The position numbers and the translations under genes are program-made. DNA of 61,428 nucleotides, filler included, from Platydemus manokwari (Eukaryota): assembly GCA_037951405.1 (NCBI GenBank). It is 4 parts of 4 records of this genome, joined end to end, with 100 filler letters (N's around TTAATTAATTAA, not from the genome) between each part and the next. Parts side by side here need not be neighbours in the genome. Positions count along the whole stretch, not along the records: positions 14,082 to 33,628 come from JBBMOY011866942.1; 3 more parts are not named here. The stretch is one strand, 5' to 3'. The stretch's first letter is position 1, and each line of letters opens with the position of its first letter. A model generated the notes under the pieces. The model saw only the letters and a list, made by a program, of their open reading frames with translations, had not been told where the DNA came from and did no database searches. This document shows positions 5,234 to 33,628 of the stretch, piece by piece.

Positions 5234-6002
5234 ACCCGACAAGATCATTAGTTGATTTGAACCAATTTATTAGAACAGCCTTGATTAATCTTTAATTCAA
5301 ATCCAGACAATTCATTATCTTGATAACCTTATAAATCATCAACTTAATACATAATCATATTTTATAAATTTTTAATAATTTAAATTACCTTAACCTTTCA
5401 AGTTAGATTTTTGAGTCAAATTTTCCTTGATCCTTGTCAATTAATCGTCTAAGTTTTTTTTTAATTTCACAAATTTGATTAACCTTTTACAGACTTTATA
5501 AATCCATTTTAAATCGTCAATTAATTATCTCATTATTAATTGATACCAAAATTTATTATTAACCATTTTGGTTGTTTGTTTTACGTAAAATTAGTTGGTG
5601 TTTCAAGTTTAGCACGCCAGCATAAACGGTGTTTCTACTCTCAAGCTGTTACTGTCAAGTATCGATTTAAGTATAGTGATAAAATATGAAAATATATTAG
5701 TTATTCAATGAGTATGTCATACCCGGAATACAAACGTGTTATAACATCAACATCAAAGATTTGGTTTAATGATTAGTGAGTACTGAAAATTGTTATAGAT
5801 TCGATTTTATCTTCTCAGCGACATAAAAATTTACGTTATTTCTACCCTGTCATTTCAGTAGATAATGATCTCCTGTCATTGTGATGCAAATGTATTTCAA
5901 ATCAATCAAAAATTAAACGATAATTATAAATAATATATATCTTTAACTAATAATTTAATTTTAATCTTCTATCAAAATAAATAAATATCTTTTTATTTGC
6001 AG

Positions 6003-10295: not shown

Positions 10296-13200
10296 TAATT
10301 GTATTGAGAATATATATTTTAAAACATTGCATTATTCTTTTTAATAATAATTTTGTAATAATAATGGTAATAATCATAATCGTAATAACAATAACTAAAT
10401 CTATTATTAATGCTGGCATGTTTGTCAAGAAAACCAGCATATGAGTAAGGAAAAAACACCCTTTGAATGTGTATAAAAATGCTTGATTGACTTTGTTGTA
10501 ATTTCTTGTTAAAATGATGGCTTGTATTTGTTTGGTGTTTGTCAGTGAGGGTTCAACTATTCAGTATTTGCAAGGTTTATGAAAAAATTTAAAAAAAATG
10601 ATTATATTTTGAAATGTTAAGTTTGGGTTTCTAGATAAATTTTTAGTGTAGAAAATATGGAACCTATTTGAATTACAGGTTGTTCATATGTATTTGGACT
10701 TTGATTTTTAAAAATGACTTTCAAATAGTCATCAATGGTGGTTACACCGGTTTAATTTACTAGTCTGATCATGAGAATTCCTATTCAAATTCTGGATGCA
10801 CATATGTATTACTAGTCTGCTATAGGAATTTGAATACTTTCCAAAAGATTGCCAAAACATAAACAATGTATATATTTGATCCATAAAAATGAAAAATAAA
10901 AAAATAATATTTGACTTTTATCTGTGAAATTTTTTCAAAATATTTCCAGAATTTTAAGCTTCGACAGTTATTATGATGCATGGGAAGGTATTTTCACTAT
11001 TAAAATTGAAATTATTTGGAATGTAAATCTCATTTTTCAGATGAATTTTTAACCTTTTAAATATAGGAACTCCTCTGAAAAGAGAATCGTGACAAATTGC
11101 TTAAATCTGAAATGTGATGGAGCTCATATTCATTGACAAATTATCTTTAGATTTGTGGTAAATATTGTGACGAGAAGGACTTTAAATTTCGATCAGAGGT
11201 TTGTACAAACTGTTATTTTATAACTCATTTTGTAATCCAAGCTTAGCGATTCCAAACAAGACGCATTAAGCTGGAGAACTATATGGCTTAGCATAACTCT
11301 TACCAAGAGAATAGTAATAATAAAAACAATACCTAAAAATGGAATTAAAAACTAAAATAAAACTAACATGTTATTAAAATTATGCGATCAAGAAAATCAA
11401 CCTAACTGTATTTCACATATTGGCGAGTCTTTTTTCGGTTTCACATATACCGATTGTGGTTCAGAAATTTATGACAAGGATTTGAAACCATATAATTTGC
11501 GCTGGTTTAAAATGGACGGAAAATGAAAATAATATGAATGACCAACATTTTAGATATAATCATGTGTAGTTTTCAATTTGTTTTCATCATCGATTGACAC
11601 GGGATGATAGAAATTACAATTCGAATAACAATGAATTACAAATTTAGCTAGTCACCAAATACATTCAGAAACCACGATAAGCCTACAGTAGATATCACTC
11701 AAGGTGGAATCAGCATCCAAAAGTTGAATATAAAGCAGAAGAAAATCACGAAGACCGGTTGTCAGAAAGATCACGCAAAAGACACACTGAGTAAGAATTA
11801 CTGATCAGAAAGACGGACAGTTGCTCGTGAAATCCAACTCATTTATAGGCTTATCGTGTGTTTCATTGATGTCTCAAAGCTTTGCTTTTCATTTGTTAGA
11901 GTCCTCCGCATGACACTCTGTTAACAAAATATCTCTCATACTCGTAAATTATTGAATTCTAAATATGGATTTCTGTAAAGAACGAATCTGATTTGTGTGT
12001 ATCAACCCTATGATTGTTATTTCCATGGTTTCCGGGAATATTTTGGTTGTTTTTATGACCTACCCAACAAATTCATTAAAACAAGTACTGTGAAATTCGA
12101 GAAAAAAATATTTTTCATTCATTTTCAAATCCTCAACAAAGCAAAAGAAACAAATCCACCGTAACAAATGAAAAATGGTTTTCTCAGTAATTTACATCCG
12201 TGCATTCAAGAAAGTCGGTGAAAGAATGTGTAGACTTGATACAAATTATGATTAGAAGAGCTTTTGTTGTTCATTTGACAAATTGTATTTGAAATTCACA
12301 ATCATTCTTAGATTTTTGCAAAGAAAAATACATCATTAATTTGCCTCGCTGACAACAGTTAATGAAAATTTAATTATACATTTACAATGAGTTTCAAAAC
12401 TTATTATAATTGTAAAATGCTGGGTTCTTCTTTCATTTTGCTCTGGTAGTTTTGATAATTGTTTGATATAATCTTTTCCTCATACAAATTCATTCTTAAG
12501 ATTTCTTAGTGGATATCATTTGTATCTTTCTCAATGATCGATATGCCATTCGACATCTACATTTAAATCGTCAAAAATTATTTCTCCTCATTTTAACAAT
12601 TATACCGCTCGATTTAGTGATCTCTAAATGTTCAGTCCGAGAGATGGTTTCTGAATAAAATAAAAGTCTACATAACATTATCTTTATCTCTACAAGGATT
12701 ATCTTTGAGTTATAGAATTAATTTTATCGAAAAAATGCTGTTTATGAGATTACGATTACGTTTCCTCTTTACTTTATTGAAAAAAATAATTATTTAATTC
12801 CTTGATGAAGCTGCCAATCAAATTTTTGTTGTACTCTAGTCTCGGTGAATGTTATGCTGATATGAATCTTACTCAGAATCCATGCAACTACTTATAGCTC
12901 AGATACAATTTATAAATTAATCTTTGTCCTATTCAGAACTTTGATGCTGTAGAATTTGAAATGGGTCTACATTATAAAATGGAGCAGTCATTCAACCCCA
13001 TTACGTTATGGAGATTCTAAGATATCACGTGCAGTTTTCGTTTGACGACATAAGCACTTATCATTTCTGAATGATTTGAAAATTATTTTTAGTTTCAATT
13101 TTTTTTACTTTCAATTATAAGTAGTAAGGAGTCATTTAAAAATAATTAAATAAAATGTGTGATTGATACTTTCACTTTGAATAATATTATTTAATTTAGC

Positions 13201-13981
13201 TCCCTATAATTGTTAGTAGTATATATCTCGAATAATTTATTAATTATAAATAATATTTCTCACTTTAAGCGATTTAAGAAACTCCAAAATCACGTTTCAC
13301 GTCTTATCATAAAAAAAATATTTGCTTAACATCATATAAATCCCAAAACCAAATTTCGAAAAACAAGAATTTATCGAAGAGATTTGTTTGCAACAGAAAA
13401 TACGTAAAATATATGAATATTAAAACAAATGTCGAAAATGGATTTTTCTTTGAAAATATTGATAGGAAAGATAAAATGGATAATTAAAGGGAAACAAGGC
13501 GGAATCATGATGTTATTAAATCAATATTTTATTAAATCAACTTACCTCAAGCACCTCAATTAGTCTCACTCACAAAAATCATATTGAGTAATTTTTCTCA
13601 TAAATCAGTATTAATTATTGAGAAAAACGCCTTTTAAACTGTCAGCAGTACTAGAAACATGATTGATTTATTTACAATTTCAAACCAACAATCGACTACG
13701 AAAAAACAAATGATGACACGGACAAATTAATTGACGGATATGAGCCATTTGATTGCGTCAGCTTATCTGATTTTGTGAACCCATATTGTAATATTCAGAG
13801 AAATTAGCTAATTGATCTCGATTCGTCGTAGTCAATTATTGATAAATATGGATAAATTCGAATATTTTGTTTTACTAGAATGAGTGATTTTTTAGGGAAA
13901 AATTGATTGTTTTCTATTTTTTTGTTGGTCATTCCGTCATTGATATTTGCTGTTATTATCGTATAGATAGTTTCTTGGATG

Positions 13982-14081
13982 NNNNNNNNNNNNNNNNNNN
14001 NNNNNNNNNNNNNNNNNNNNNNNNNTTAATTAATTAANNNNNNNNNNNNNNNNNNNNNNNNNNNNNNNNNNNNNNNNNNNN
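13982..14081. other. Artificial contig linker N44-TTAATTAATTAA-N44
   Basis: Identical 100-nt structure at three places; the 12-mer puts stops in all six frames. Confidence 0.97.
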
Positions 14082-14158
14082 TCATAAGATCTTCAATTTA
14101 ATATTTAAAAATGAAAAGCCAATTTAAAAAAGGCCATTATTTTTGCACCAACCTAATA
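14082..14158 (+). mobile_element. Mariner element terminus (TIR plus TA)
   Basis: GGCCATTATTTTTGCACCAACCTAA-TA is the reverse complement of the TTAGGTTGGTGCAAAA mariner-type TIR; it sits at a contig start. Confidence 0.8.
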
Positions 14159-14189
14159 AATGATATATATATATATAATATTATATTCT

Positions 14190-15430
14190 TGGATTCATTG
14201 AGATTAGTAGAGCCTGGAATTTCTGTTAAAAAGCAAGTAATATATTTATTTTGAAATCTAAAAAATAAATATTTCTACATAAGCATATTAAAAGAATTAA
14301 TTTTAACAAAGCTGATGCAATGTTAAATAATTCATTTCCAACAATTGATAAATTTTATTCAAGAAAAATGAGAAAAGGATTAAGTAAAAAAGAATGTCCA
14401 TAAGGATCAAGATTACATTGATTTAAAACTTAAAAAATTATACGAATCTATGATATATTATATAAAATTAGATGTTTTAATATCGGCAGGATAATTTTAA
14501 AAAATGTGAGATCTATGTTTAGAATATTCTCAAACTGATCTTTGTGATTGTTACATCTGAATTGTATCCGAAATTTGAATTGAAATTTAGTAAAATTAAA
14601 TTAAAATATTATAAAGAGAATATATCTATGATAAACTACTATTTTCGAAGCACCGATGGGTGATTTTGGTTTAGTAATGAATAAATTTAGAAATATTGAA
14701 ACAAATTTTCAAACAAATTATTTTTAGCAAATTAGGAATAAATAATTCATATCTCGAATAAACAATACAAAAACAACCTCATTTAATAATATGTATTTGC
14801 AAATTCATTATATACAAGTTGTATAATATCGCACAAATCTAGATTTAAACTATGAAAAAGTGAATTATTCAAAGATGTTTATAATAGGAAAGAGAAGTGT
14901 AAAATCCATAAGCAATTTGTATTCGAAGTTGATTTAGAATATCCCTTAAATATTCGCAAAAGATCAAAATATGTTTCTTTATCTGCAAATAAAAGAAAAA
15001 TAAATTATGACATGATGTTTCCTTATCAAAAAGAAACCAACCATTTTACCGAGATATTAAATTAACACAAGAAAATCAATATAAATATGTTATATTAGGA
15101 AATAATCTAGATTTCTTTATAAAATAGAGAATAATAACAAAAAGATATATAGAAAATTAATTATAAAAACTTAATATTGGTAGCATATATGTAGCATTTC
15201 ATCTAAAATAAGAAATATAATAAACACAAATAAAAATGAAATAATGATAGTGATTCAAGCTGCTTTCAAATGCGTTCGAAGGGAACACAAAAGAGAATCC
15301 GAGAGAGCTACAAAATATTAGAATTGTTAATAATGAAAAACTTTCAAACTCCAACGTCTATATTATCATTCAAACATTCAAAAATATTTACTGAAGATGT
15401 TAAAGCAGTGCTTTTAAATCAATGATAGAT
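14190..15430 (+). pseudogene. Polinton/Maverick-like family B DNA polymerase fossil
   Basis: Ordered motifs with stops and frameshifts: YIKLDVLISA..F....DLCLEY..TD (cf. YLKTDVLLLADVFENFR), ANSLY (cf. DANSLYG), EVDLEYP at ~14925, KYV....L, NAFEGNTKENPR....IRIV (cf. NAVFGKTMENVR). Confidence 0.75.
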
Positions 15431-15489
15431 TTGTTTCGATTGATCTTTGTTATTAATATCATGAATGTAAACCGCAACTATTTTATAAG

Positions 15490-15650
15490 ACTCACCGAAA
15501 ACGAATTGTAAAGTCACGACATCAAATTATAGTTAAATACATTAATTTAAACAAATTAATTTGATTTTATTCAAAAAATTTTTTATAATAAATCAAATTT
15601 TATATAAAATTTAATCTATAAAATTTTAATTCAATTTAAAATGCTCACAA
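15490..15650 (-). repeat. Family B repeat copy 2
   Basis: Reverse complement matches 39245-39401 (TGTGAG.ATTTTAAA.TGAATTAAA...TTTGTTTAAAT...TGTATTTAA...TGTC.TGACTTT.CAATTCG). Confidence 0.7.
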
Positions 15651-15858
15651 TTAATATTATATATATGACGTCAGAAATCAATTTTAAGATTCCTCAAGAA
15701 AACAATAAACACTTCAATTGTGAAATGATTAAATAAACTCAATAAATAATGAATAGAGGTAAAAAACAACCAAATGCCATGAAGTTATATTAATTCAAAT
15801 TACATTCAAGAATTGTCGACAAGTCAAATCAATAATAATAATCATAATGTTAACGCAT

Positions 15859-18800
15859 TCAACAACAATTGACAACCTCATAGAACGTATGAGGAATGCA
15901 AACGCTATCGCTGAACCAAGTCTTGATGACGAGTCGTTTGTTGTAAAGACATTTGCTACGGCGAACTTGAACGACCGAGCATCGTTTATTGCAAGGATAG
16001 AGATTCGTCGCCGTATATTTCCTGCAATATCCTTTCGTATTGGCCCAGAACGAAATGTTCACCACTCGAGATTTGTAATTACAAGCACTAATTTTCGTTT
16101 CGGTTGTCTCGCAGCAATTTTCGCACGAATAAAATTCTCTCTTTTCTTTGTTGACACAATTTCCATTCGGTAATTTCTGGACATATCTCGTCACAACCAC
16201 TCGTCGTCCTTTCTTGCATTTGCCAACGATTTTGATCGGCGTTTCGTCGCATATTTTACAGAATCCTTCATAGGAGATCTTTTTCACGAAAATACTGATG
16301 CCATGTTCTCTGATGTATTTGATTCGCAACACTTGATATCGGCCTTTGTTCGGTCCTTGTTGGACACAGATTTTGAAGGCTTCTTGAATTTCACATCGTC
16401 GACATCGACGATTGCAATGGTATGGGCAATTCCTTCTCACTGTCGGTTTCGAACAGTGGCCACGTTTGTATGCTCGTCGACAGATAGCATTTGGATATTT
16501 GTTGACACAATTGCACGGCGTTTCCACGACACGGTTGACGATGACACATCTTCGGCCTCTTCGAACGTGTTGGATGATTCTTAATTTTCTAGAGCATATC
16601 TTTTTGCCGGCATATATTTTACAACGACATCCAGTGAGATATTTATCAATCTTTACCGGTGGGCATTTTTCTAATAATGATAAAATAATAATAATTATTA
16701 TTATATTAATAACAATAATAATAAATAATCAATCTGATAGAGAACTCACCGCAGTAATTACATGTTTCCGCACATAGATATTTGCGATAAATGTTCCTTG
16801 TTCCACAATGGCCGGATTTTCGAATAATTTCGCATTGACTTTTTGGTAGAATGTCATGGCAAATACTTCCACATTTTGTGTTTGAATCGATTTGTGTTTC
16901 ACGAACACATTTGCAATTTCTGAGATTATAAACTGTCCATTTGACAATACGTTTTTTATTCACGCATCTACTCTGGAAATCATCATCGGGACATTTGACA
17001 TCGGTTCCAAATACTCTATTTATCGCTATACATTTACAGTTCGGTATTCTGGCTTTAGTACATACCAGTTTCTGAATTATTATCAATGTAATTTGATAAA
17101 TAATAAATATTTAATTTAATAACTTAAAACATGAATAATTTCTATAATACACTCAGTTTTTGCTTAACATCATAAAAATAATAAATTAAATTGATCCGTT
17201 TAAACAATTTTTTCATTAATATAAATGTATAATTTGATTTATGCATTATAACAATCAAAACTATTTATATTTAAAAAAATTCTTTATTGTAAAATTATAC
17301 CGAGATTAGTAGCACATTCATTTATTGTAATTAATATAAAACTGAAATAATAAAAAAATTACATGGAATTGAATGGTTTTTATTATTCGACCATCACCGA
17401 TACATTTTCGATGTGTTTCTTTCCTTCTTGGACATGAACAACGAACTCTGAAAACTTTTATTCTTTGAATACATCGGCATGAAACAAGAGAATAATAATG
17501 TAAAGTGTAAATTTTATAGGAATTGATACATGGCCCAACTCTAAGATATGATCCCTTGCATCGTATTTGGCGTCCCAATGTCATCTAAATGAAAATCTCA
17601 AATTTAATTATCTTTTCACTGGGCTGATTATTAATTATTAAACAACTATATTTTGCAAACAAAAAAAACATTTTTTAATATCAAAAATTATTTAATTCAA
17701 TAAATTACTTTCACTCTTCTTTCGCATTTATACCGATACTTTTTATCAGTAGACTTATTTTTCACATAATATATTGTGCGAATCATCGACTTGTTATTGA
17801 CACAAATCTCTTTAGTGGATCCTTTGGCACATCGACACAAAACATATTTCTGTCTCGATTGTCTGCAACATTTGCAACCAATTCTCGATACCCATGAGGT
17901 GAAGCAAAGTTTATATAAACCTTTTTGATGTCTCTTTCTGCAATTTCCACATCTGCGACTTATTGGTTTGTGACAAACTAAATATCAAGTATAGATGAAT
18001 AAAACTTAAATTATTAATAATTTCATGTCTAAATTAAGTGAATTGATTTTTATGAAATTTGAGTGGTGAAATTATAATAAAATTTTATTATCTTTCTATT
18101 ATAATAATCTAATAGGTAAATAATATTCAAAATATATTAATTTTTTCAATTTTATTCAGCTTAATAAAATTTTAAACATTAAATAAATAAATAAATATCA
18201 ATTCATACCAATTCTTTGATCAGTATATCTGATATATTTGTGGCATTTATTTAGTTTTTCGTCTAATTGGTAAGTTATTGTAGATCTTCGAATGATTCCT
18301 TTCTTTTTTAAACATCTCACCTTAACACTGTTACGTGGACAACCTGAAAATATTATCATAAAAAACTTAAAAAATAGAAAAATTAGTTTAAGAAAATCTG
18401 ATTCAGAGTACAACTCATAAGTCACTACATCAAGAAACATTATTTTGTTTTAATATTTTTATTCCAAGGGTCGTTTATTTTTCTCTGCATATACATCTAT
18501 ATTCATTGGAATGATCGTATTACATTGATTTACCTAATTTTCACCAATAATATATATGTGTATGTGTGTGTGTGTTTGGGTGCTTGAGTGTGTGCATATC
18601 ATAACTATAAAAGCCACCACCTACCGAAAACCATTAATAGTTAAATTTAATAATATAACAAAATCATAATTAATTAAAACTTACAGCAAATTATTTCTTT
18701 AACGGATACCTTTGGTATGCATTTACAATTCTTCAATTGATAAGAATATATTCTGTCGATTCTAGTCCGAGTTTTATAATTACAAATACCTCGTCTGGTA

Positions 18801-21800
18801 CGTGGTTTACGGCATCGAATTATATGAACTCGGCGATTAGTAAATCTTCTGCATTTTCCATGAGAAAATACGAATCTGTGATTCAATACCACAGAAGTAT
18901 TTCTAATACATTTGTATTCAAAGTAATCTTTCTTCACACAACAGCATTTTCCCAGTAGACTAACTCTTCTCGTTTGACAACGACATTTAACCAAACGTTT
19001 AGTGATGGTATGACTAGAAATTTCACATGTTCTCTTGTTACATTTGCCCTGAAATTAAAATAGTTAACGTAGGATTTCGTGATCTGATAAATCATACCAT
19101 GATTACAGCGCGTCTTGGTCGACAGGGTGGAGTCACATCAGATTTGTATTCAACGATGTTACAAGTTTTATGGAGTTGATTGAAATAGTATTTCTTGGTC
19201 TTTCTTATCAGTCGATTATTGAAACAAATTGTGATTGGTTTTGGATTCTTTGGACAACAACATTTCTCTCGTCTTGATTTTCTTTCATCTTCACAAGTTG
19301 TCTTCCCGTTTCTAAAATACGAAAATATGTTTGAATCCGATATTAAAGTAATTTATTTTATGCTAAAAATGTCTTTTTTATCAAGAATAATATTTCAAAT
19401 TTTACCTCAAAACAACTAAATGTGATCTGGTGATTGTAATATACCTGATGCATGTTCTTCTGTTACATGCACCTTTACTAATTTGCCTTGGTTTGCAACC
19501 TGAAATAATTAATAATATATGGGAAGCATTTGAATGAAACATGAATGAATTATTTAATAGATCTTAACCAATTTTAAATACCTATCACGGTTTTACGTTT
19601 TTATTTTAGAATAACAACAAAGCTCTTATGATTTTCCTATGGTTACTAGGTACCGATATGAATCTGAAGATCTGATATATTGTTAGAAGTGTTATTTTAT
19701 GTTCACAGAAATGTAAAGGAATTATAAAAAAATAATAAAAAAATGGATCAATAAATTGAATGAAAATGCCACTTATTTGTTCGGAAAAATCTTTAAAAAA
19801 CCCATAAGTAGGAATTTATTAAAATTTGAAGTGTTCAAAAGAGCAAATAACGCTTAAGGAAAAGGCTTGAATGAAGGACATTTCATCTCATTTCTCTCCT
19901 ATTTCTGTTAATAATTTGTAAAATAATAAAAATAAATTTCACTTACGACAAGGATATCTTTTCTTGACTTGTGTATTAACGCATTTGCAATTCCCTTTGT
20001 GTGATATGACACATTTAAATTGTTGAGTCAATGATCGTTTGTTACAAGGCGTCAATTTGAAACAATTTACCATCAAAGGACAATAAACTTCTTGAATACG
20101 AATTGTTTCTAGCTTACTAAACCAACCATCAGATCTTATTACAAATCGTATGGTGATAATTTCGATTCTGTTTGTTAGTTTATTGCATCTTTGTCTTACC
20201 ACTGGTGGGATATAGCATGTTCGACAAGGTCTCGTTACAATTCTACGCCTAAAACGGCACTTACAATTCACAGATTCGTGATATTCATAAACATCATCCC
20301 TGACACATCTTCGATTTCCATTTATTTTCTTGCAATTTCCACGAATTACTCGTCTTCTTGAACATCTTACATTGATTACATTTTCCGATTTGACGAATCT
20401 TCGGCATTGACAATTTATAATTCTATATACAAAATTTACGTTGTGAATTCTTTCTTTTATACAGGTTGATGATACCCTTGGACCATAACATGCACAAGCA
20501 CAACGTCGAATCTTTGTAACTTGTCTACAGTGACATTTATCATGAACGAATTTCGAATAGATCAAGTCCTTAATTCCATAAGATAAATACGGTCTACAGC
20601 TAGATTGTCCAGTTAGACGCCAATGACTATGACAGACAATTCGTTTCCTTTTTGTGATTGAAGTACGGATGCATTGATGATTTCTTAAAACCGTGAATGA
20701 ATTTAGAGTGACTATTTCATGTCTCTTTGCATCACAAGACTTTCTTACTTTTAACTTGCGTTTGCAAGCGCAAACATACACACGGACATCCTTATTAGGA
20801 ATATATTTACAATGTCCATTGAGATAATAAGTAATTTTCGTGCGAGTTCTTGTCGAATAGTCTTTGCCTCTAACGAGTGTACAGGGTGAAACATTCAAAA
20901 TTATTTTTGGAGGTCGAATATATATTCTTACACAACGAGTCCTCCTCACACATTTGCACATCGAAAGATGGTATGTAATGAATGTTTTCAAAATGAATCG
21001 TCCTGCGCGATTACAAGATATTTTCGTTTGACTTCCTCTACATTTGCAACGGCAAGGGATTGGGTTTACACTCCATGGCACACACTTACAATTTCTTAAT
21101 ATATCTCGATAATATCGAATGATTCGATAGCCGTTGGACCCACATCGAGTTGTCCTTTTATCAACTTTTGATGAGCACTTCGGAACCATATAGGTCCTTG
21201 TTACTTGTTTTTTGCATCGATGATAATAGAGTTTGTATGCAACCTTTTTCGTTACAATACGATTATGTACACATAAACGATGGTAACGTGTTTTAGGGCA
21301 ACAACATCTCACAGATCTCTTTGTAATGACATTTACACAATGTCTATTTCGAAGTTCTTGATGACGATATATATCTATTCTTATGCATGAAGGATGACTA
21401 CTGCATTGACCTTGTTTTATTAATACTGGTGTTTTCTTACATTTACAGTCAAATTTTCGAACAAATCTTACCATGATACATTTGCATTGCCTAACATGGT
21501 ATCTTATAGTTACTTCTGTTTCTCTTCCAGTGATAACATTGCAAGTCCTTCGAACTTTATTTTCTGGACAAATTACGCTTTGTATTTTTAAAACTTTACT
21601 GTATCTTACACATTTATTTCGTTTATAATCGAGTAAAAATCCTCTTATTTCTGTCACTTTTCTATTACGTTGACATCTTTCATATCGAGTGACTTTTGGT
21701 GAACATGAACAGATTATCGATCTTTTTGTTTCGACAACTTCGCATTTGCAAGAATGATATCTCCTTCTTAACCTTCTGGTTATTATCACTCGAAAACTGA

Positions 21801-24800
21801 AATGTTTATGGGGAATACATTTTCCTATTGTTTGAGGAATAAACCTGGGACATTCTGAAGAGTTTAGATGAAAATGAAATAAAAGGTCACAATAATAATA
21901 ATAACAGTACTTGGTCTGATTAATTTTAGAGATTTTCTTGAAAAACATCGACAGTTCTTCCTGAAATGTGTCCAAGTTATTTCGTGAATAAAATACTTTC
22001 CTCCACATCTTCGATATTTGGAATTTTTTCGACATCTACAATCACATGTTTTACGCTCGACTTGTGGACAGCAAATGCAATTGCGAAGATAAAATCTTGT
22101 TATTGTTTTAAGGTATTTATTGCGCCTGCATCTAGATTTTCGTATTATCGGACGCTTGGAACAAGAAACGGGATATATTTTTCTGTCAGCTCTTCGACGA
22201 CAAAGACCTTTGATGACAACATAACTGTAAGTCGTGACAATTATATTTGATCCAACACATTTTCTCACACTATGGCTGCGTCGACATCCTGAAAGATTTA
22301 GATAAATAATCGATAGAAATTTTTATTTTAATTTTTGATTAATAATAAAATTATATTTTTCGGTATTATTATAATGTTCGTGCTATAATTTTTGCATATA
22401 CAAAAATTTGAAATTTTTATTAAAAAACAATGACTGTTTTGTTTTATTAAATCGATAAAAATACTCACTGCAATCTTTTAGTTCTTTTCTGATAATTCTG
22501 CGATAACACTGACAATTCTTCACATAATATCTCACATATGTATACCGATTGACACTCACACCATAACCACGAGATAACATAAAACATTTACTCACTTCGA
22601 CCTTGATTCTATTGCATTCCAATATTGGTCTTGAAACGATAGATATTTTCCATGTTACATGATTTCCTCTGCAAATAGCGACTCGGGTTTCGACCACAAC
22701 GATGCGATTATCTTTACAATATGCCCTTCTTTTGTTTGCAAATGCTACTCCACAAATGCATATCTTGGATTTGGTAAACCTTTTGCGCATACATTTACAA
22801 TTTTTAGGATATCTGGTTTCGAAAATAATTTTTCCCCATCCAGTTTTTCTGTCACAGGTTTCACCAATTTTGGTTGTTGTGATTTTGGCACAACGACGCA
22901 TCAGATGGATTCTTTCTCTTTTGATTTTATGGCATGCGTAATATTTGAGTAGAAATGAATATGTGGTTATTTTGAATGAGTTGTCCATGTAGCATTTCTT
23001 GGTGGTATACGGTTTGCGACATCTACAGATTTTATATTGTTCTTTCGTGACTTTAGCTTGGCAACGATTCACGTGCTTATTGAATACCAATTTATAATAT
23101 CGAATCCTTATGAAATATTCTTTGTGTTTATCGCATTTTCCTCGTTTCGTCCAAATAAATGAGCCACCACAGCATTGACGATATTCTTTTACTTTAACTT
23201 TGGAACATCGACAACCTATTCTTCTGTAGCAGAACATTTTCACAGTGGACGTTCGACGGACACATCGACTTTCAATCTTTTCACATCGCCATCTCTGGCA
23301 TTTTACTGGTTGCGAAGTTATTCTACGGACTTTGATGCATACATTATCTTTCGAAAGAACAAATCGAACATGGATGAAAATTTTTAATCCCCGTTTAGCT
23401 TGGCATTTGGAAATAGTGTAAGGCTTCTTGTGAAGACAACCTAGTTCAAAATAAATATCAGTCAAATGAAAAATAATTCCTATGGAAACTAACAGTTCTC
23501 CTTATATTCAACACGTTGGACGACAAAACGACATCGGCAGTGTCGTTTGTAACTGGAGAAGTATTCAACTTTGTATGTACATCTACCAGTTTGGGTTCGT
23601 CTTGGTGGTTTAGTATGACATACCACGTTCAACTTATTGATTTTAGTAACTGGATAACATCTGAAATCTCGTAATTGATAATATGTTATCGTGATAACAC
23701 GGGTTCCATGGTGGACGCATTGTCTGGTGATTATGGCCTTTTGACAACATTCTTAAAAAATTAATTTCGTGTTCACAACAATGAATGAAAAAATATTCTT
23801 ATAATTCAAACAATATTCACGATACTAACAGATAAATTTTGGGATCTGATAAATGTAAAAGCTTATGCTATTAAAAATTAACCCATGGTAATTAAATTAA
23901 AAATATAGTCTATTATGTTAGAGATATTTGATTGGCTAATATCTTGAATTAATATTCTAAATGAATATTGGTCTAGTAAATTTTATTCCTATTTTCATTA
24001 TAATTATTGATTTATTAATCACAACTTACTGTAATTTAGTATTTCCTTTCTAATGAGTCGATCTACACATTTACAATTCTTCACTGTTTTTCCATAATAA
24101 GATCTTTCAAATTTGCAGTCATTGATTTTCCTGTCTTCAATTCTAATGGACATGATGCACATAATTCCATCGTATGACACAATTGGTTGCAGAGGAACAC
24201 ATCTACCATTAATCAATCGATAACAATATTTTGTAATTTTTATTCTATTGTTCACACATTCTCGACGGTCTGGTCGTCTTGGTACAACAAAGTATCGGAA
24301 ACGTCTTATGCATCTACAATTCACGAGATTGTAGGTCGTGACACGATATCTTATAAATTTGCCATTACAACCGCCGATCACTTGTCTTTTTGGTTTGGGA
24401 CATGCTGAATAATATTATGATAGAATAAAATCAATAATTATTATTAGGAAAAAATTGCGTTGCTAAAAAATTAAAAAGTCTTTCGTTACAATTGTTTTTA
24501 TTACAAAAATAAAATCCAATCTAACTTATTAATCTTCTTCTTATCGATGATCGAGGATAGCATTTCAAATTTCTATTAGAATAACATGTTGTCTTATATA
24601 CGTAATGATGATTGATACATTTGGTGCTGTATCGACATGGTCGACAACATATATTGATTTTGACAGCTTTATTAGCCATCCTACATCCGCATCGCTTCGA
24701 ATCATATTCAAGTCTTCGATAATATTTCACGGTGAATTCACCAGGTTTTTTGCAGTATTTTGTTCTAAATAAAATCCATTTGGTCTTTTTGTAGCATGGC

Positions 24801-27800
24801 ACTGATTCAATTCGCTTTTTGATTGTTGGTGTGCAAGGTGGCTTCGAATATAAACTGTACAACACGGTCTATTTATATAAAATGTATTAAATATTAATAA
24901 TTATAATAATTGTGAGAATTTAAAATTTAAAATTTAGAAGATTTTATATATTCATATCAAAGAATATTAATTTGTTTAAATGATTGTGTCGTGAATTTTC
25001 CAGTCGTTTTCAGTTAAATAGAAGCTTTATTAAATAGAGCGGCTTACCATAATAATAATGATAATAATAATAATATTAATAATAATAACCGTATATATTC
25101 TTTTCCCGTATTGACATGAACTGGAAAATTTCGGTTTCTGACAACGGCAAATCCTTTTGAATCTTTTCACAAATTTTTTGCAAGTATTGTCTCTAAATTT
25201 TCGCCAATATGTGATTGTAATATCCTGATATGAGTTTTCATTTTTACTCTGAGGTGGGCATTTTGATCGGACAATTATCTTTTTTGGGCACGGTTCTACA
25301 AATATTATACAGCTCTTATGAAGACCGTTTGTTCAACGATATCTATAACACTTACTACATGAAGTTCGAGTTGTTCTCACTCTCTTCCTGCACTTACAAC
25401 GTTCAACGGTATAATAGTAGTGGCTGATCGTTAAAGCATTCGTCTTTGGATTGCAAATTACCGTTTTGTAACCAGAACGACATCCGATATATCTGACCCA
25501 ATGCTTTTTCACCAGTCTACATGATGTCATCCTTATGTTGATGCGAGTATAGGGAAACAGATTTATTTGCAGTGTTATTTGACGATATTGTTTTTGAACA
25601 TATAACTGAACCCAAAAGTTGATTCAAAGAAAAGTTTTAAAAAAATATTTTTACCCAATGATTATTTTTACATATTTTTTCAACAGTAACCTTTCGACAA
25701 CATCTGGGATTTCTTTTGACAATGACACCTTTGGTACACTTACAATGTCTTATAACGTAAAAGGTTAACGTGTATTGTGTAGAACATTTGTTTTCTCGCC
25801 TAGATACGTGAGGATTGTCACATACTGTGATAAGAAAAAGGATTTTTAATATCACCAGAAGAAATCACATTACTTACCTATTCTTCGTCTATGCAACGTT
25901 TTCCTGGGTACACACCTATTGTTGATTCGAACGTAGTTGATTTGCTCAGTGTAACTTGTATTGCGAATACATTTATAATATGTCTTTCCATCTCTACAAT
26001 ACTTCAATTCCCATTTTCTATCCACACGTTTACAACAACGACATTTATCATAGACGTAGTATGTTTTAACACAGAATCGATAGAATCCATGACCTCTTTT
26101 GATCAATTTCGTTGAGCATCTGTACGATGGTTTGGGGCATTTTTCCATTATTGGAGTTTCATATCGAGAAACTTCGCATTTTTTCATTCCCGGTTTGAAT
26201 TTGAAACATACAGTTTTCTTCACATTTCTAATGCATTCTTGTTGACAATAATTCAACTTAGAACAGTCGCAAGGACTCCTGAATGATGTCCGTGAATTTT
26301 TCTGACATCGACAATGGAATTTTGTCCAGGAATGTGTCGTCACTAATAATCTATGTCTTATGCATCTTTTTTCACTGAAACGTTTATTGCAAACTATAAA
26401 ACAATGAATACCAGATCAGTTGGAATCAGGAGAATTTAAAACTATAACTCACCAACTCGTTTTTCTCTCACACTTACACGTCTAACACATCGATAAATAG
26501 GAATGTAATTCATGAATGACTGTCGCTCATAACTGGTGATTATTGTTTGGTAAATCGAATGACGAACACAAATTCTCCTTTTTCTTCTGGCAGGACAGTC
26601 TGGAGAAATATATTTCTTTAACTCAATGCAATGAAAAACATCTCACGGCAATCCTCAACGAGCGATTTGGCCACAAACCAACGACAAACACCATTCACTC
26701 GTTTATATCTAAGTATCTCGACGATTCTCTTTGGTAATCTTCCACATGGTTTTCTTCGAATACGATCTTTTTGTCGACATTGACACGGTAAGACATATCT
26801 TTCCACTCGAAGAATGCATTTACAATTCACCACAACGAAAGAGAATCGTTTAACAGATATTTGACCAGTGATATAATTGCATTTGCTACGAATTTCATGG
26901 CTGGGTCGACATCCTAAATTAAATATCTCAACTGGAGTTTTCCAAATTTTATCAAGAATTTTTCTTAATTAATTGTCAGATAAAGAATTATAAAAATTTA
27001 ATAAATCGATTCTTTAAATTGATTTAACAGCTAATTCTAATTCTACAAAAATCACCTATTTAAGTTGCAAAATTTGGAATGACTTTCCGAATTTTCATTT
27101 TAAAATTTTACAATTTGTTCTTATAATTTATCTTATTATACTATCATTTTACATTATCATTTCTAAATATATAAATAAAATTGCAATGTTCTGGTTTTGA
27201 AAATTAATAAAATCGGGTATTTTCTATGTGTATAATCAAAATGATTCGGATATTATCAATATTTTAAATTGATTCTCTGTCATATAATATCTAATTGGGT
27301 TTTTGCGTATTTCTTAAAAGAAATATTGGCTTAATTTAAGAGAAAGGGTCTTTAAACCTACTTTCGTTATAATGAATTTTCGCGGAAGAGATAGTTTTAT
27401 AACGCAATTTAACAAATAACTCCTATATTTGATTTATTCGTTTAATTCAGTTAATATTTTACTTTTTATGATATCTAATAGGGACAAAACACAGTTTTAA
27501 AACCAAGTTCCCATTCTAATCACAATACTTCTGTGTTTATTTGAGTTTTTAAATTTAAATTTTTATAATTACAGTTAATTACAGACATGTTTAAAAATAT
27601 CATTGGTTATTTTTATAAAATAATTGTAAAAATTGAGAATATCTCTCAATTTCATTCTAATATTTAAAAAAGGGGTCCTCAATAATTTTCAATAAATTGC
27701 AATTCGACCCCCTTTTTATTTGTTCAAATAATCAAATTTTAAGAGATTTTTAGGATCTAATGTATTTAATATTTGATTTCAAACGACTAAAATTTTTCTT

Positions 27801-29635
27801 AAATACTTAAATTAAAAAAATTAAAATACTTTAAAGAATATAATTAAATAAACTATATAGATTTTGCAAAACACTCAAAAAATTTAAAATTTCATTTTAG
27901 GACCATTTTTTTAACTTTGGCCGAAATATTTTTGTTTATTGCGTTATATTTACAGAAAATATAATGAAATAAATTAACTTCTACAACAAATGTAAATATA
28001 AAATTTACACAACATTTTATATTTTTTGATGTATCGATTTATAAACATATAATTAAATAATTTTCATCACTCAAAAACCTTACTTATCACTGCATATCTG
28101 AACTTAACGAATGCAACACAACGCCATCGTTCGGAATTGAATCTGTAAGTCGTTACAATTGTTTTCAATCTAAATCCCTCGCATACAACTCGTTTTGTTG
28201 GTCGTGGACATTTGCAAGTTTTCCTTAACCTTATCGTTCTTGAAACACATTTGCAGTCGTTAATCACAAAGAATCGTTTAATAATCCAATATATTCCTTT
28301 ATGGCATCTGGTTCTTCTGATCCGGATACTATTTTTGCAAACTGGAAAGTGATTCAATCAAATTGTAATTCAATATCAAATCTTTTAACTTTAACATCAA
28401 TTATTTTTTGTTAAAATAAGTTGTATTGGGGATTGAATGAAACATGCCGACAACCTATTTTTCATACGCTAATTAAAAAAACTAAAATAATAATTAAAAT
28501 TAAAATACAAATCGTGCATTTATTGAACTGAGATTTTGAGCAATTACAGAAACAGATTAAAAAAATCATATTTGAATAATAAAATTATGATAAAATTTTA
28601 TTGGCAGACTTAGATAGAAATATACCATATATATATTTATTGTAAATCTAAAATTTTGTCCTTTCCCCAGTGGTTTTAATAAAATATTATGAATAAAGGT
28701 CATGAATATAGTAATGTCTAAGGTTCATTTTAATCTTAACAATAATATTAACAAAAAGCATAATTATAAAATATAAACAATTCTTAATGTCACTCACCAA
28801 CAGCAATGAAATTAGTTTGAACTACACGTACACATCGTTTTCTATCATGAGCGACTACGTATGTGATAGTCACTATACGAATTTTGTTTTTGTTGATACA
28901 TTGAACTATTCTTTGGGGTTTCTTGTCACAACATCTATACCGTGTCCTTATCCGTTTCACGGATTTGCATTGGCAATTTTTAACAAAATGCCGTTCTGAG
29001 TGTACTTTATAAACACATTTACTAATGTTCTCTATACGAGATGTGCTTTGTGATCGACAAGGCACTTCTTCTCGCCAGTATCTTACTGAAGGGACGCACT
29101 TCGTCTTTTCATAATTCATTTGACTGCTAGTCTCTTTCACGTAATAATAATTTCCTCGGCATATTCGTTGAATAAGCTTTCGTCTAGAACAACGACAAAG
29201 TTTCCAAATGATTTTGGTTGTACGTCTACATTTACAAGTACTGCGGTGATGTCTCCACGTTGTTTGGATTATTTTCTTGAAATATTTTCTGTCTTTGTCA
29301 CATTGGCCAATTTTAAAATTGACTTTCTTGCATTTCACGTGGATACGTGTTTTCCTAGATTTTTGGATGCACATACGCCGTCTTGAATCGAAACTAAACC
29401 ATTTGACAATGCGATAGAATACTCCAGTATATCGATCACAAAATGAACTTCTTATAGGAGGATTCAAACAACAGCATTTATATGTACATGTTTTGACTCC
29501 TGTTCGACACTTTTCATCACGAAAGAATAAATGTTGTTTCATGAGACAAGTTCTTCGGTCACATTTTTCTTTGTCTTCACGAATTATTGTATATTTACAA
29601 GGGCATTGCTGAAAGAAACATTAAAATAGTATTAA

Positions 29636-29666
<31 letters not shown>

Positions 29667-32600
29667 AACAATAATATTAATTTCCTCACTTCAAATCTGT
29701 GCTTCCTTCGTTGTTCGCAATTGCAGTTATTCCTAACATAGTAAATAGTTGTCACCTTTCTTCTACGATGAGGATAAATACATTTCGAAACAATCAAACG
29801 TTTTGGTTGACAGTTAGTGGGTCGTTTATATTGGGAAATCAAAATATTAACGCATACTCGCCTTTTCAATACTCGTCTGAATACTCTTGTTACCAAATAA
29901 TCATTGATACAACGGATCCTTGTGACCTGTTGTGGTTTGCAACCTTAATTAAAAATATTGAATCATCACAAAATTCGCATCCAACAATTTCATCTTACAG
30001 CATAATCGTACTTCATTTCGAACATGTTTCGTTTTAATTTTACACCGATGAAGATACTTCTTTATGATTTTAACGCGTCTCGTGCAATTCACTTGGCATT
30101 TGCCTTTATTTTCTATGTATCGTGGTGGGAAAATAATCTTTCTCTTTCTAATTTGGACGAATTTTCGACACCTATACGTTCCTCTCCACTTTTCTAATTT
30201 ACTATATTCACTGGTGTGTAGGATAATTCCCAATTTTTCAATGCAAATTTGATGACTTGATGGTGGATGACAACCTGATTAACAGAAACTTGATATTTTC
30301 GACATGTAAAATAGGTACTCACAGCATGTTCGTTGATGTTTAGTTCGGTAATCTTGGCATTTACATTGTTTATTTCGTCTTCGAACGATATGAATATCTG
30401 TAGCTTTGCAGAAAAACTTTCCATTCTTAAATCGATTGCAAGTACCTTTTATTGATGCTTTTTGCCTGCACCCTGGTAATATTTTAATCAAAAATTATAA
30501 ATATTATTTTTTCTATCCGCAAACAAACACGAACTTTTTAAACTTCTATGTACTGAAGTATTTCATAGTGAGTTCGACAATCAATTCAAATTTACATAAA
30601 AAACATAATTACTTACTTTGAGTTACATCTCGATCATTATAAATTGGAATGCATCTACCTCTGATGAATTTATAAGTTATTGTTCGAATAATCTTTCTCC
30701 TCGCCACACAAATTCGCCTTACTATTGGTCTTTGATTACAGCCTATAATCGAAAATTACTTTCAGATTTTCTGCAAATTATTTTGAATTATTTCACGGAA
30801 ATTGTGCAAGTAAAACGGAATTTATTAAAAAGGATAATCAAGTTTATTATAATCTTTCCAAGATCAATTACGAAACTTGGTATATTTGAAGGCAGGTAGA
30901 ATGTTAGCAATACAATTAATTAACTTACACCAAACAGTCACTCGTTTAATGACATTACTATCGCATCTGCAATTTCTTGGACGCCTTTGGATAATTGTTG
31001 TGAGTTTCAAGCATGTGAATTTATCCATCTTGATTTTCTTAGTACTTTTGCATTTTGTTTTTCTCACTCTGACAGTTCTACTTGGTACACATGAATAGCA
31101 TCCATTAAGTTTGTGGAAGAAAACTGTTGTTTGGTAATTCCTATGGTTTATACATCTGTGCACTACGCGCTCATTTCGTCTGCATTTATGACAATTTTCG
31201 AATACCACTGCCCGACTTTTTATGCATCTGTTGGCGACTTCTTTTTTAATATAATAAACAATGCGTCGCTTCCCAGTACACATGTTACAGCGGCCTGTTA
31301 CTCTTCTATGTTCTAGACAATCTGAAAAACAAATAACACATGAAATCACAAGCTAATGTGTCACGTATTTATACCGCAAATTCGAGATATTTTTCTGATC
31401 AATTTAGCACATCGTCCTTGGGAATCTCTAACGAATTTGTAGTAGGTCGTTATTCGGATATTAATTCGGTAATTACATTTTCCAACATGTTTCCTGCTTC
31501 TACCACATTCTAAATTTCAGATTAATTGACCCTAAAAATTAAGTTAAATAACACTTACGACATCGATCGTAATTGCAAGTCAATCCACAAATAGCTTTGT
31601 AGAACTCGTGAAAGCACAGACCCTTATTTCGGAAGTGTAAACATTTCTTAGTACTCAGCTCGTCTTCGCAATTACCACCTGAATCATCAATTAACAATAG
31701 ATAATAAAAGATTTCAGTTAACAAATTGAAATTGGAAAAAATATTACTTGTTGTCTTGCACATGCCACACATTTTCGGACAAAGCATATTCATCTGCTCG
31801 GGAAATTCTTGACATTGACCTTTATTTTTCCATTGCCTACATTTCTCAGAACTTTCTCTGTCGACGCATAGATTTATACATTTACAATGCATTGGTTTGA
31901 CACAAAGTGCACCATCTCGTATGAATCCCTTTTTACATTCACAACCTTCTCTTGACGGTAGATCATAACATGGATTTTTAGTACCATAGAAATAGTTTTC
32001 ACAAGTTCTTGGACATGATGTAGCTTTTTGAGAGAAATATTGATTGATTCCACATTTCATTGGGCACCTGAATGCAGTTCTCCACTTGATTCCACTGAAA
32101 CCTGATTCGGAACAAACTTCGGCCAGACCAGATAATATCTCACATCGAATTTTGTCCAATCTTCTTGGATTTCTTTTGTTTACGCACATATCAATCAAGC
32201 AGTCATCATAGAAACTTTTCATGTCAACATGACCGTTTTGACCACATTTATAGAATGGACTATTTTTAGACAGAATACCACCGCAATAGTTATGCGCTTT
32301 GAGCTTTCTGATCCAATCTCTTCCACAAACATTCTCATATCTGATATCGTTTGCTTTCTTACAGATTTGACCTTTCGATGAAATACCATAACTGTTTCCA
32401 ATGAGACTAAATTTGTTTTTGCTTTTTGAGACATCTTTCCCAGATTTCGTTCTAAAAATAAACAAGTAACAATGATGTCAGTTAAGTTTAGAATTATTAT
32501 CATTGTTAATATTGATCATGGATGTTCCGAAATACGATTGTAGACGGTGCTCAAGTCTAAAGATATGGTGACTATTGTGCAATGGTGAGATCAAAGTTTT

Positions 32601-33534
32601 ATTCGATATTCATTAGCGAAAAGAATTAAGATTCCACTCAACAAGAAATTATCTGCTGGAATTGGTAATAATTCGATCATTAAACTATCGTATCTCTTAA
32701 GTTTAATTCCTAATATCAGAACTATTATTACGATCATTATCTATAATATCATTTTAATTAATAAAAAATGGTACCTAAAATCATCTCGTTTCCCGTTGCA
32801 ATCACCACAGATGCCACTCATTCGATTAGCATAACGTTTTGAAACTTCGACGAAGGCGTTGGATTTACCGTCAAATGCAACTCGTACGAAACATGATGGT
32901 GCAACGAATTGTAAAAATTGATTCGATCGGAATATTCTGACCTCATCGCCGTGCTCGTATGGGATTGGAGTGATGACATTGTTTACCTAGACAAAATAAT
33001 AAAAATTAATTTACCATCGATATTTTTGTAAATAAATAGAAACTAAAATACTGACCTTCAAAGTTCTGTGCTTTCCGAGCTCGTAAGAATTCCCAAACAT
33101 GTAAACAGTCACGCTCTGGGTATAGGTGAAATATTTATTTCCGTTGCGGTATTCATTTTGAACTTCAATATTAAATCCACAATGTCTACTTTTAAATTTT
33201 GAAAGCGTATATTTGCAATCCCCATAGAAATGTATTGTTTGTCCATCATAGGTTCTGTAGTGAGGATCACCTACGGCGCTACATTTGCATAAGTCCTTCT
33301 TCTCCAAATCGCAGTGCAATTTGGTCATTGTTGGAAATGGTGTGCAAATACCATTTTCTCTGACGTAGGTAGTTATTCTAGCATTTTTCGTTCCGTTTGT
33401 ACATGGTCCTCTATCGCGACAAGATACAATGAAATATAATTGAAAATAAACACTCACTTTTTGACAATTGATCTGTGACAAGTGCCATGCCTTGTCATCG
33501 TCACATTTTCGATAGCAAGTAAATAAATGATTAA
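15859..33534 (-). CDS. Giant (~4,000 aa, manual estimate) secreted Cys/Arg/Lys-rich protein: signal-like segment, VWD, C8, TIL, 2x ShK, ~75 tandem ~45-aa Cys-rich modules, 2x ShK, Cys-rich tail; ~30 exons; first exon lost in the gap
   Basis: Continuous series of minus-strand Cys-rich ORFs bounded by GT-AG sites. Junctions checked join in frame, e.g. exons 33458-33534, 33056-33410, 32775-32986, 31748-32451, 31559-31678, 31375-31509; the largest is ~19946-21856 and the last ~15859-16670. The most 5' visible exon reads LIIYLLAIENVTMTRHGTC (hydrophobic, signal-like). Stop TGA at 15859-15861. Confidence 0.88.
16410..16862 (-). other. Two ShK-like domains near the C-terminus
   Basis: CHDILPKSQCEIIRKSGHC.......YLCAETCNYC and CVNKYPNAICRRAYKRGHC......NCPYHCNRRC. 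Confidence 0.72.
27331..27926 (-). repeat. Family A repeat copy 2, in an intron of the giant gene
   Basis: Reverse complement aligns with 4641-5233. Confidence 0.85.
31560..31868 (-). other. Two ShK-like domains after TIL
   Basis: CVDRESSEKCRQWKNKGQC...M..LCPKMCGMC and CEDELSTKKCLHFRNKGLC......ICGLTCNYDRC fit the six-Cys ShKT spacing. Confidence 0.8.
31888..32290 (-). other. C8 and TIL domains of the giant protein
   Basis: C..IL..NSPF..C.....FYDDCLIDMC...C..L..LA..C...G....WR....CP (C8), then CG.NQ.F......CPRTC......C.....EGCECKKGFIRDG..CV....C (TIL-like). Confidence 0.88.
32390..33289 (-). other. von Willebrand factor type D domain of the giant protein
   Basis: CSAVGDPHYRTYDG..IHFYG.CKYTL; V.FDG; GICGDCNGKRDDF across three exons. 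Confidence 0.92.
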
Positions 33535-33555
33535 CTAAATCAAGTATAGAATTTA

Positions 33556-33556
<1 letters not shown>

Positions 33557-33628
<72 letters not shown>
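33557..33628. repeat. (AAT)n microsatellite at contig end
   Basis: More than 20 perfect AAT units running into the gap. Confidence 0.95.

Follow-up and report, generated by a model that had tools for sequence, protein, structure and literature searches.

A giant spliced gene in Platydemus manokwari

The window analysed here is a stretch of 61,428 nucleotides (nt), filler included, made of four joined parts of the genome assembly of the flatworm Platydemus manokwari (GCA_037951405.1). One of these parts, the piece at positions 14082-33628 (record JBBMOY011866942.1), carries on its minus strand one long spliced coding sequence, 33534..15859, for a giant, strongly basic and Cys-rich protein in which a VWD-C8-TIL unit and ShK domains precede about 75 copies of a module of ~44 amino acids (aa). 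An exon chainer assembled this sequence into 33 exons, 12,057 nt and 4,018 codons, equivalent to 4,018 aa and ~480 kDa, which bears out the ~12 kb of spliced coding sequence estimated in the initial annotation, where no strand had been given. The piece is AT-rich (20-37% GC per kb), and its minus strand presents a dense run of stop-free segments with much Cys, Lys and Arg. The features of the gene, in window coordinates, are as follows.

15859..33534, minus: whole gene as visible, from the exon chainer (33 predicted exons, 4,018 codons; 5'-incomplete)
33458..33534, minus: first visible exon, read as an AG acceptor after an (ATT)n tract, then LIIYLLAIENVT-MTRHGT-CHRSIVKK in frame
33338..33412, minus: single basic Cys module before VWD (GPCTNGTKNARITTYVRENGIC; module hidden Markov model (HMM), 17.9 bits)
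32780..33283, minus: VWD (Pfam PF00094, 46.3 bits)
32061..32288, minus: C8 (Pfam PF08742, 43.2 bits against a cutoff of 23.7)
31884..32054, minus: TIL (Pfam PF01826, 30.8 bits against a cutoff of 24.5; detected only when the sub-sequence was scanned alone)
31758..31868, minus: ShK1 (Pfam PF01549, 33.6 bits against a cutoff of 20.9)
31569..31673, minus: ShK2, weaker (18.3 bits alone, below the cutoff of 20.9; second ShK stretch in the scan of the whole open reading frame (ORF))
16877..31509, minus: main array of ~75 basic Cys modules of ~44 aa (module HMM and alignment; 26 exons)
16751..16861, minus: ShK3, borderline, near the C-terminus (Pfam PF01549, 20.6 bits against a cutoff of 20.9)
15859..16670, minus: last exon, with a Cys-rich stretch, then ~3-4 further modules, ending ...EVVNCC and stop

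The chainer is a dynamic-programming procedure that uses codon log-odds and splice-site matrices trained on a first pass, and it admits only GT..AG introns and exons of at least 40 nt. Every junction of the 33-exon model is GT..AG, and no in-frame stop interrupts its 4,018 codons. Introns mostly measure 47-94 nt, half of them 47-69 nt, and the stop codon lies at 15861-15859. The first-pass model missed real exons and was dropped, as were models built with low intron penalties, which contained micro-exons of 4-18 nt, over-spliced the C8 domain and scored more poorly against the orthologues described below. The model obtained with the 40-nt minimum scored best in that comparison; a few of its exon junctions are uncertain. 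The locus holds a single giant gene, intact and conserved, whose 5' end is truncated by the boundary of the piece.

A basic cysteine module of ~44 residues forms the body of the protein

The module was modelled by an HMM seeded on its Cys pattern and then iterated, giving a consensus of 44 positions, CRCKKRIRKGKCNKKTGRIIVTIIRYVLRNCKCVRRVKRKRVPC, and ~80 matches along the gene model. Independently of splicing, the raw six-frame translation yielded 45 matches of at least 10 bits on the gene strand, and at this threshold neither the opposite strand nor any of 20 composition-matched shuffles of the body gave a match, so that the diverged ~45-aa modules of the initial annotation stand. That annotation had placed the modules after the head, which holds for the main array but not for one further module N-terminal of VWD.

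Cysteines follow the spacing C-x10-C-x18-C-x-C. Of 36 modules compared, every one has C12 and C33, 31 have C1 and 25 have C31; where C31 is missing, position 2 or 3 often carries an additional Cys. As marks of the family we take tandem modules of this size with Cys at 1, 12, 33 and either 31 or 3, a basic composition and a beta-rich core that bears a ..TxxxY.. motif. MAFFT alignments of three-module segments resolve two alternating subtypes, A (C..C..NCxC) and B (CxCP..C..GxC), which together make an ~88-aa super-repeat; a histogram of CxC spacings agrees with it, with peaks at 13 and ~74-92 residues.

Outside the known domains the body comprises 3,540 aa with an isoelectric point (pI) of 10.23, a net charge of +729 and 356 Cys, which amounts to ~+9 net charge and ~4.4 Cys per 44-aa window. 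Its composition (R 14.0%, K 11.6%, C 10.1%, I 8.6%, V 7.9%, T 6.5%, Y 5.6%, D 2.1%, E 3.0%, Trp 0.8%) is, as had been noticed at first reading, rich in R, K, C, Y, I, V and T and poor in D/E. The reported absence of tracts rich in Pro, Thr and Ser (PTS) was likewise correct: P+T+S makes up 15% overall and does not exceed 29% in a window of 100 aa, so the protein is not a mucin. The whole protein contains nine N-glycosylation sequons.

The exon structure follows the modules. Phase 1 accounts for 22 of the 32 introns, and 19 of the 28 introns in the body lie at most 3 aa from a module boundary, against ~4-5 by chance; phase-1 introns at module boundaries are the usual layout of shuffled extracellular modules.

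No Pfam family was found for the module with the long exons, and nothing recurrent appeared among 47 three-module segments searched at E up to 1. Against all PDB sequences, a profile built from the modules gave no match at E up to 10, and a search of the ESM Atlas by sequence features returned no usable match. On these searches, and in keeping with the initial annotation, which did not recognise the module as a named domain, it is a previously undescribed domain of ~44 residues that makes up ~90% of the predicted half-megadalton protein.

Relatives in flatworms and conservation of the array

An exhaustive search of 1.84 billion protein representatives with a 635-aa exon as the query identified nine relatives. 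Those with names are all from flatworms, namely Macrostomum lignano BOX15_Mlig022069 g1-g3 (PAA78532.1, PAA78542.1, PAA90218.1) and Cichlidogyrus casuarinus KAL3314545.1, and the others are UniParc-only (P0001-P0003), IMG or Logan entries. Their names are automatic labels at most (for M. lignano e.g. 'VWFD/ShKT/VWFA/CTCK domain-containing'), and none is characterised. Since no relative is more than 41% identical, P. manokwari itself is not represented among the nine entries. The novelty foreseen in the initial annotation thus survived both checks proposed for it: neither a characterised full-length orthologue nor a strong Pfam match for the module was found, the relatives being uncharacterised Macrostomum and Cichlidogyrus proteins.

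The module HMM matches all nine relatives, with 4-23 matches per protein of at least 180 aa, and their pI ranges from 8.7 to 11.5. The M. lignano relatives bear VWD, C8 and ShK, and one Macrostomum protein (P0013) combines modules and VWD-C8-ShK within a single chain. At one end of the range, P0004 is an uninterrupted ORF of 2,157 aa with a signal peptide, 17 modules, no VWD and a pI of 8.7; at the other, P0009 has a pI of 11.5, 21% Arg and less than 1% Asp+Glu. The charge range of the family is therefore wide, and it includes members without VWD. The contexts of P0004 and P0009 are IMG sample 3300073438 (6.7-kb contig) and Logan SRR23162813 (5.6-kb contig).

P0001, P0002 and P0003 align with the body collinearly at 31-41% identity. 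P0001 (1,694 aa) covers model residues 2321-3970 in a single high-scoring segment pair at 41% identity and shares the C-terminus, while P0002 and P0003 carry the collinear coverage back to residue 1514; for the head, P0013:1630-2101 aligns with residues 16-460 at 36% identity (E 1e-95). Such alignments stay collinear over ~15 introns and 1,650-1,700 residues in single proteins. Within three-module segments, orthologues are 45-48% identical and paralogous modules 14-25%, and a search of the coding sequence for tandem repeats at the DNA level found none. Because of this collinearity, the higher identity of orthologues than of paralogues and the lack of DNA-level repetition, we regard the locus as an old single-gene array under selection: judged by these alignments, the array is ancient, its modules are conserved one by one, and the exon chain is one gene.

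One Cichlidogyrus contig carries a gene call with VWD and, after it on the same strand, four calls with modules, so that a module, then VWD, then modules succeed each other as in the window, and the C8-TIL-ShK region is 32% identical to that of the window (E 1e-43). These five consecutive calls, of 489, 535, 741, 839 and 672 aa, occupy positions 879-14212 of JBJKFK010000966.1, where a stop-free 4-kb stretch (3058-7125) already covers two of them; they look like the pieces of a single giant orthologous gene that annotation has divided. In M. lignano NIVC01000681.1 the module matches lie at 14392-42648, all upstream of VWD-C8-ShK and none downstream, and the gene ends at 49468, soon after ShK.

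Two further observations concern individual relatives. P0018, a modules-only fragment, carries the UniProt label 'CTCK domain-containing', and a PROSITE cystine-knot profile may match the module weakly. In P0003 (UniParc UPI000865A87B), residues 1-~50 are perfect HRRYYSNYY tandem repeats, Tyr-rich and basic, which stand before the module array and recall tanned structural proteins.

The head and the incomplete 5' end

A 69-nt intron (33055-32987) divides the VWD domain, and its halves score 45.7 and 40.0 bits against the PF00094 cutoff of 22.9. The initial annotation had described one VWD-C8-TIL unit and two ShK domains; VWD, C8, TIL and ShK1 pass the Pfam cutoffs, but ShK2, at 18.3 bits alone, stays below 20.9. 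The ShK2 motif KCLxFRNKGLCxxEFYxxxCGxTCNxDxC also occurs in the ORF of Cichlidogyrus, a monogenean. Head and first module exon are separated by a 49-nt gap across which the frame is kept. In the ORFs Pfam detects no C-type lectin, EGF, TSP1, VWC or CTCK domain. A fourth ShK domain in the last exon was considered on the strength of a six-Cys pattern seen by eye; Pfam gives no match, and we do not claim it. Between ShK1 and ShK2, the 69 nt at 31679-31747 have GT..AG ends yet are stop-free and in frame (..SNIFSNFNLLTEIFYYLLLIDDS..), so that retention would keep the frame; they were taken as an intron because they are AT-rich and have no Cichlidogyrus counterpart.

In the first visible exon LIIYLLAIENVT is a hydrophobic stretch resembling a signal peptide, and the start of a module follows. 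Upstream of this stretch within the piece, an in-frame stop follows immediately 5' and there is no earlier in-frame ATG; the sole nearby ATG lies in another frame with a stop right behind it. The equivalent Cichlidogyrus ORF (LSLLLAWAFAQ-DS-C, a module, then VWD) is likewise without a Met. The stretch would represent the h-region of a signal peptide whose initiator codon is situated on a small exon past the edge of the piece, and the ATG at 33498, chosen as the start by the chainer, is probably internal and not the true start. The VWD unit would then be the true N-terminal head, as the initial annotation had it, with one module in front. Among the relatives, the N-terminus of P0004 is a clear signal peptide and that of P0013 is hydrophobic. 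We infer that the protein is secreted, because all recognised domains are of extracellular types and because of the signal peptides of its relatives.

Predicted fold of the module

Structures were predicted with AlphaFold2 from input alignments consisting solely of the modules of this gene and its relatives (pLDDT, predicted local distance difference test; pTM, predicted template modelling score).

19948..20766, minus: six consecutive modules (mean pLDDT 93.1, pTM 0.52, no residue below 70)
20371-20766, minus: first three of those modules, modelled alone (pLDDT 93.5, pTM 0.66)

Both models are all-beta, each module contributing three long antiparallel strands, and some of the predicted strands continue through module boundaries; strand 79-93, for example, extends over the first cysteines of the next module. 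About two disulfides per module are predicted. Each module junction would gather four Cys, namely C12 of one module and C1, C33 and either C3 or C31 of the next, and these could form one intra-module and one inter-module bond.

Structure searches gave weak and generic matches, and no fold was assigned from them. In the PDB, Foldseek matched nothing but GFP barrels at ~29 A root-mean-square deviation, which we rejected as meaningless; the best VIA-align match in an exhaustive (wide) search reached Z 4.4 over ~40 residues, tied among unrelated three-strand meanders; and the best Atlas structure match had a template modelling (TM) score of 0.45. Weak alignments over whole domains were obtained with 6rk1 (46/46 aa, Z 3.3), 7r84 (51/52, Z 3.3), 8voi_B (Z 3.7) and G5 clusters (TM 0.34-0.42), and those with thrombospondin type 1 repeats (TSR; Z 3.2-3.5) and the pleiotrophin C-domain (Z 3.7) are level with unrelated meanders. 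We take these matches as a hint of the fold class, small, elongated, three-stranded and disulfide-stapled, and make no claim of homology.

Comparison with known proteins

The closest parallel in overall architecture is the avian protein CREMP, in which 81 two-disulfide modules together with VWD and C8 form fibrous material (PMC12723725). Both are giants in which ~80 tandem two-disulfide modules constitute most of the chain, with VWD and C8 and ~10-13% Cys; the likeness is one of architecture only. The CREMP modules are of ~25-28 aa, with the pattern Cx4Cx5Cx8C, an EGF-like loop and a short hairpin, whereas those described here are of ~44 aa with three long strands, and no Pfam EGF or FOLN match was found in the 47 module segments. 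CREMP has three VWDs on its C-terminal side, is not described as polycationic and has no sequence relationship to the window protein.

Among flatworm proteins, Mlig-ap1, Tmed-ap1 and ap3 are also giants that bring together vWD-C8-TIL and very cationic K/R regions, united in one protein or split over two (PMC6410801, PMC9229212), and their cohesion rests on charge interactions with anionic glycans (PMC6410801, PMC9229212). A C-type lectin, vWD-C8-TIL and a long EGF array mark Mlig-ap1, Mile-ap1 and Tmed-ap1 alike. Unlike the window protein, ap1 bears a C-type lectin and 17-19 EGF domains, and its K/R regions are of low complexity (GRK/KR, pI >13) and not Cys-structured; no sequence similarity to Mlig-ap1, Tmed-ap1 or ap3 appeared in the exhaustive search. 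Mlig-ap2, the flatworm comparison chosen in the initial annotation, is less apt than Mlig-ap1 with its vWD-C8-TIL and extremely cationic K/R regions (PMC6410801), and neither is a relative. The module family is absent from the adhesive-gland transcripts reported for three flatworm species.

Small, elongated domains of three antiparallel beta strands, the class at which the weak structure matches hint, are found in TSR, in the TSR-like heparin-binding domains of pleiotrophin and midkine and in bacterial G5 rods. In TSR and pleiotrophin the domains are stapled by disulfides, and pleiotrophin is a basic, heparin-binding protein. Unlike TSR, the module has no WxxW or CSxTCG motif and four Cys instead of six, and at E up to 1 Pfam TSP_1 (PF00090) matched none of the 47 three-module segments, so that the likeness is one of fold class at most. 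With gel-forming mucins, VWF and zonadhesin the protein shares VWD-C8-TIL, large size and high Cys content; in contrast to mucins and VWF (D1-D2-D'D3, PTS, CTCK), it has one D assembly, no PTS tract and no detectable CTCK, and its bulk is a cationic module. The kind of protein, a giant array of small disulfide modules with VWD, is thus known, whereas the module, its charge, its predicted fold and the flatworm family are undescribed.

Proposed function and alternative explanations

We propose, with a probability of about 0.6, that the protein is a secreted polycationic rod that binds polyanions, is crosslinked via its D assembly and acts as a cohesive or structural part of a secretion. The architecture on which this proposal builds would consist of a signal peptide, one module, VWD-C8-TIL, two ShK domains, ~75 modules, a ShK-like element and a few more modules. 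The array would adopt the shape of an elongated, disulfide-stabilised polycationic rod, and this rod could bind polyanions, among them sulphated glycans, the acidic components of mucus and surfaces of negative charge. Through the N-terminal D assembly, and possibly through odd cysteines, molecules may associate or become crosslinked, and the protein would in this way lend cohesion or structure to an extracellular secretion, for example adhesive, mucus, rhabdoid material or egg-capsule cement. The charge-based mechanism is suggested by analogy, because in flatworm adhesion cationic K/R-rich cohesive proteins act together with negatively charged glycans (PMC6410801) and sulphated glycosaminoglycans organise rhabdites (PMC5450325). 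Given the occurrence of the family in a monogenean and in Macrostomum, a role in egg capsule or cement is as likely as a somatic one in adhesive or mucus. A more specific formulation, which we offer tentatively, is that an undescribed, platyhelminth-restricted domain would form, through ~80 copies that are possibly stapled to one another, a polycationic beta rod of at least ~100 nm, and that this rod, conserved from Macrostomorpha to parasitic Monogenea, would bring order to the sulphated glycans of a flatworm secretion, be it rhabdoid or mucus material, adhesive or egg-capsule cement, as their protein counter-ion or scaffold.

Several results count against the proposed rod. An initiator Met and a complete signal peptide were sought in the piece and neither was found. 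The locus was found in a single public run, whose contigs continue collinearly through the introns and are therefore genomic DNA, and no RNA run was found to contain it. The order of head and array differs by lineage, Macrostomum being reversed relative to the window and Cichlidogyrus. The disulfide pairing and the rod geometry were deduced only from the strand order of the models. The family is not among the duo-gland adhesive proteins characterised in Macrostomum, Minona and Theama, no characterised flatworm adhesive protein (ap1-ap5, ao1) resembles it, and searches of the literature on Mlig022069, planarian glands, rhabdites, eggshell and vitellaria, and Macrostomum organ screens found no mention of it. 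Polymerisation in particular is unsupported, as the visible gene has only one VWD-C8-TIL unit, the chain ends in ordinary modules and its C-terminal 270 aa match no Pfam family at E up to 10, CTCK included, a very divergent knot being conceivable; of the polymerising polycationic fibre in the initial annotation, the strong positive charge (net +729) is confirmed. The roles listed there, in adhesion, mucus or rhabdite material, egg capsule or antimicrobial coat, are conjectures.

A protein of egg capsule, eggshell or egg cement, made in female accessory glands or vitellocytes, with disulfide crosslinks and quinone tanning at Tyr and Lys, would be a flatworm counterpart of avian CREMP or of octopus octovafibrin; it is a specific version of the structural role proposed above, compatible with it, and in this narrow form possible but doubtful. 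The family occurs in Macrostomum, a monogenean and the species of the window, and glands for egg envelope and cement are among the secretory systems common to these animals; to our knowledge, Neodermata have neither rhabdites nor duo-glands. The Tyr (5.6%) and Lys (11.6%) of the body, the HRRYYSNYY repeats that open P0003 and the overall architecture shared with CREMP (~81 two-disulfide modules with VWD and C8) all fit such a role. Known trematode eggshell precursors, however, are small Gly/Tyr-rich proteins unlike these Cys-rich giants, and the flatworm eggshell and vitellaria literature that was found mentions no such protein. Cleavage of a polyprotein at basic sites into dozens of ~44-aa cationic antimicrobial or toxin-like peptides, ShK included, is very unlikely. 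The modules are indeed small, very basic (~+9) and Cys-stabilised, as are many host-defence peptides, and ShK domains are found in toxins, but predicted strands run through the module boundaries, where there is no spacer or regular processing motif, the modules are individually conserved in fixed order among orthologues, and peptide precursors do not typically feature a D assembly.

The remaining two explanations are still less credible. KCP and BMPER consist of a Cys-rich repeat array and one VWD-C8-TIL unit, and the Macrostomum order of many Cys modules followed by VWD-C8 recalls this layout; a secreted kielin/chordin-like or crossveinless-2-type protein that regulates growth-factor signalling is nevertheless highly improbable, as none of the 47 segments matches VWC even at E up to 1, ~80 repeats and a charge of +729 are far beyond that family, and the order is opposite in the window and in Cichlidogyrus. 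That the chainer stitched together several adjacent genes or a decaying pseudogene array is equally hard to sustain. Such an origin would accord with a sole run that is genomic and carries no RNA support, with the division of the Cichlidogyrus locus into five calls by its annotators, and with the uncertain junctions and the micro-exons at lower penalties. Against it stand 4,018 stop-free codons over 33 exons, single foreign proteins that are collinear over 1,650-1,700 residues and ~15 introns down to the same C-terminus, the in-frame passage across 49 nt from the head to the first module exon, and Macrostomum P0013, which unites modules and VWD-C8-ShK.

The module is a new extracellular domain family, confidently foldable in prediction, with no Pfam entry, solved relative or literature, and all its named carriers are flatworms. 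As a secreted polycationic rod, the protein would be a candidate for those that give flatworm mucus, rhabdites, adhesives and egg capsules their mechanical and charge properties, and its presence in a parasitic monogenean may indicate a role in parasite attachment or egg biology. For biomaterials, its interest would lie in the combination of positive charge, ordered beta structure and dense disulfides, compared with the low-complexity K/R adhesives known so far.

Flanking sequence, introns and variation

The remainder of the piece lies downstream of the gene.

14082..15858, no strand assigned: 3' flank, 22-26% GC, AT-rich low-complexity repeats only

No notable ORF and no RNA gene was found in this flank. 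The longest predicted intron, 26914-28083, measures 1,170 nt at ~20% GC, and a search of it for module matches, ORFs and RNA families found none. Microsatellites of the type (TAA/ATT)n, with 12-25 copies, occur in introns and at the 5' edge of the piece (33554-33628, 29630-29666, 25049-25088 and 16672-16729). The contigs of the public run break at the microsatellite 33554-33628, which is probably the reason why the assembly, and with it the piece, stops there. Between the public DNA run and the window, eight positions differ within 30366-31240 on one 1.6-kb contig, four of them (31234, 31235, 31239, 31240) packed into 7 nt of a module exon; these differences probably represent allelic or strain variation.

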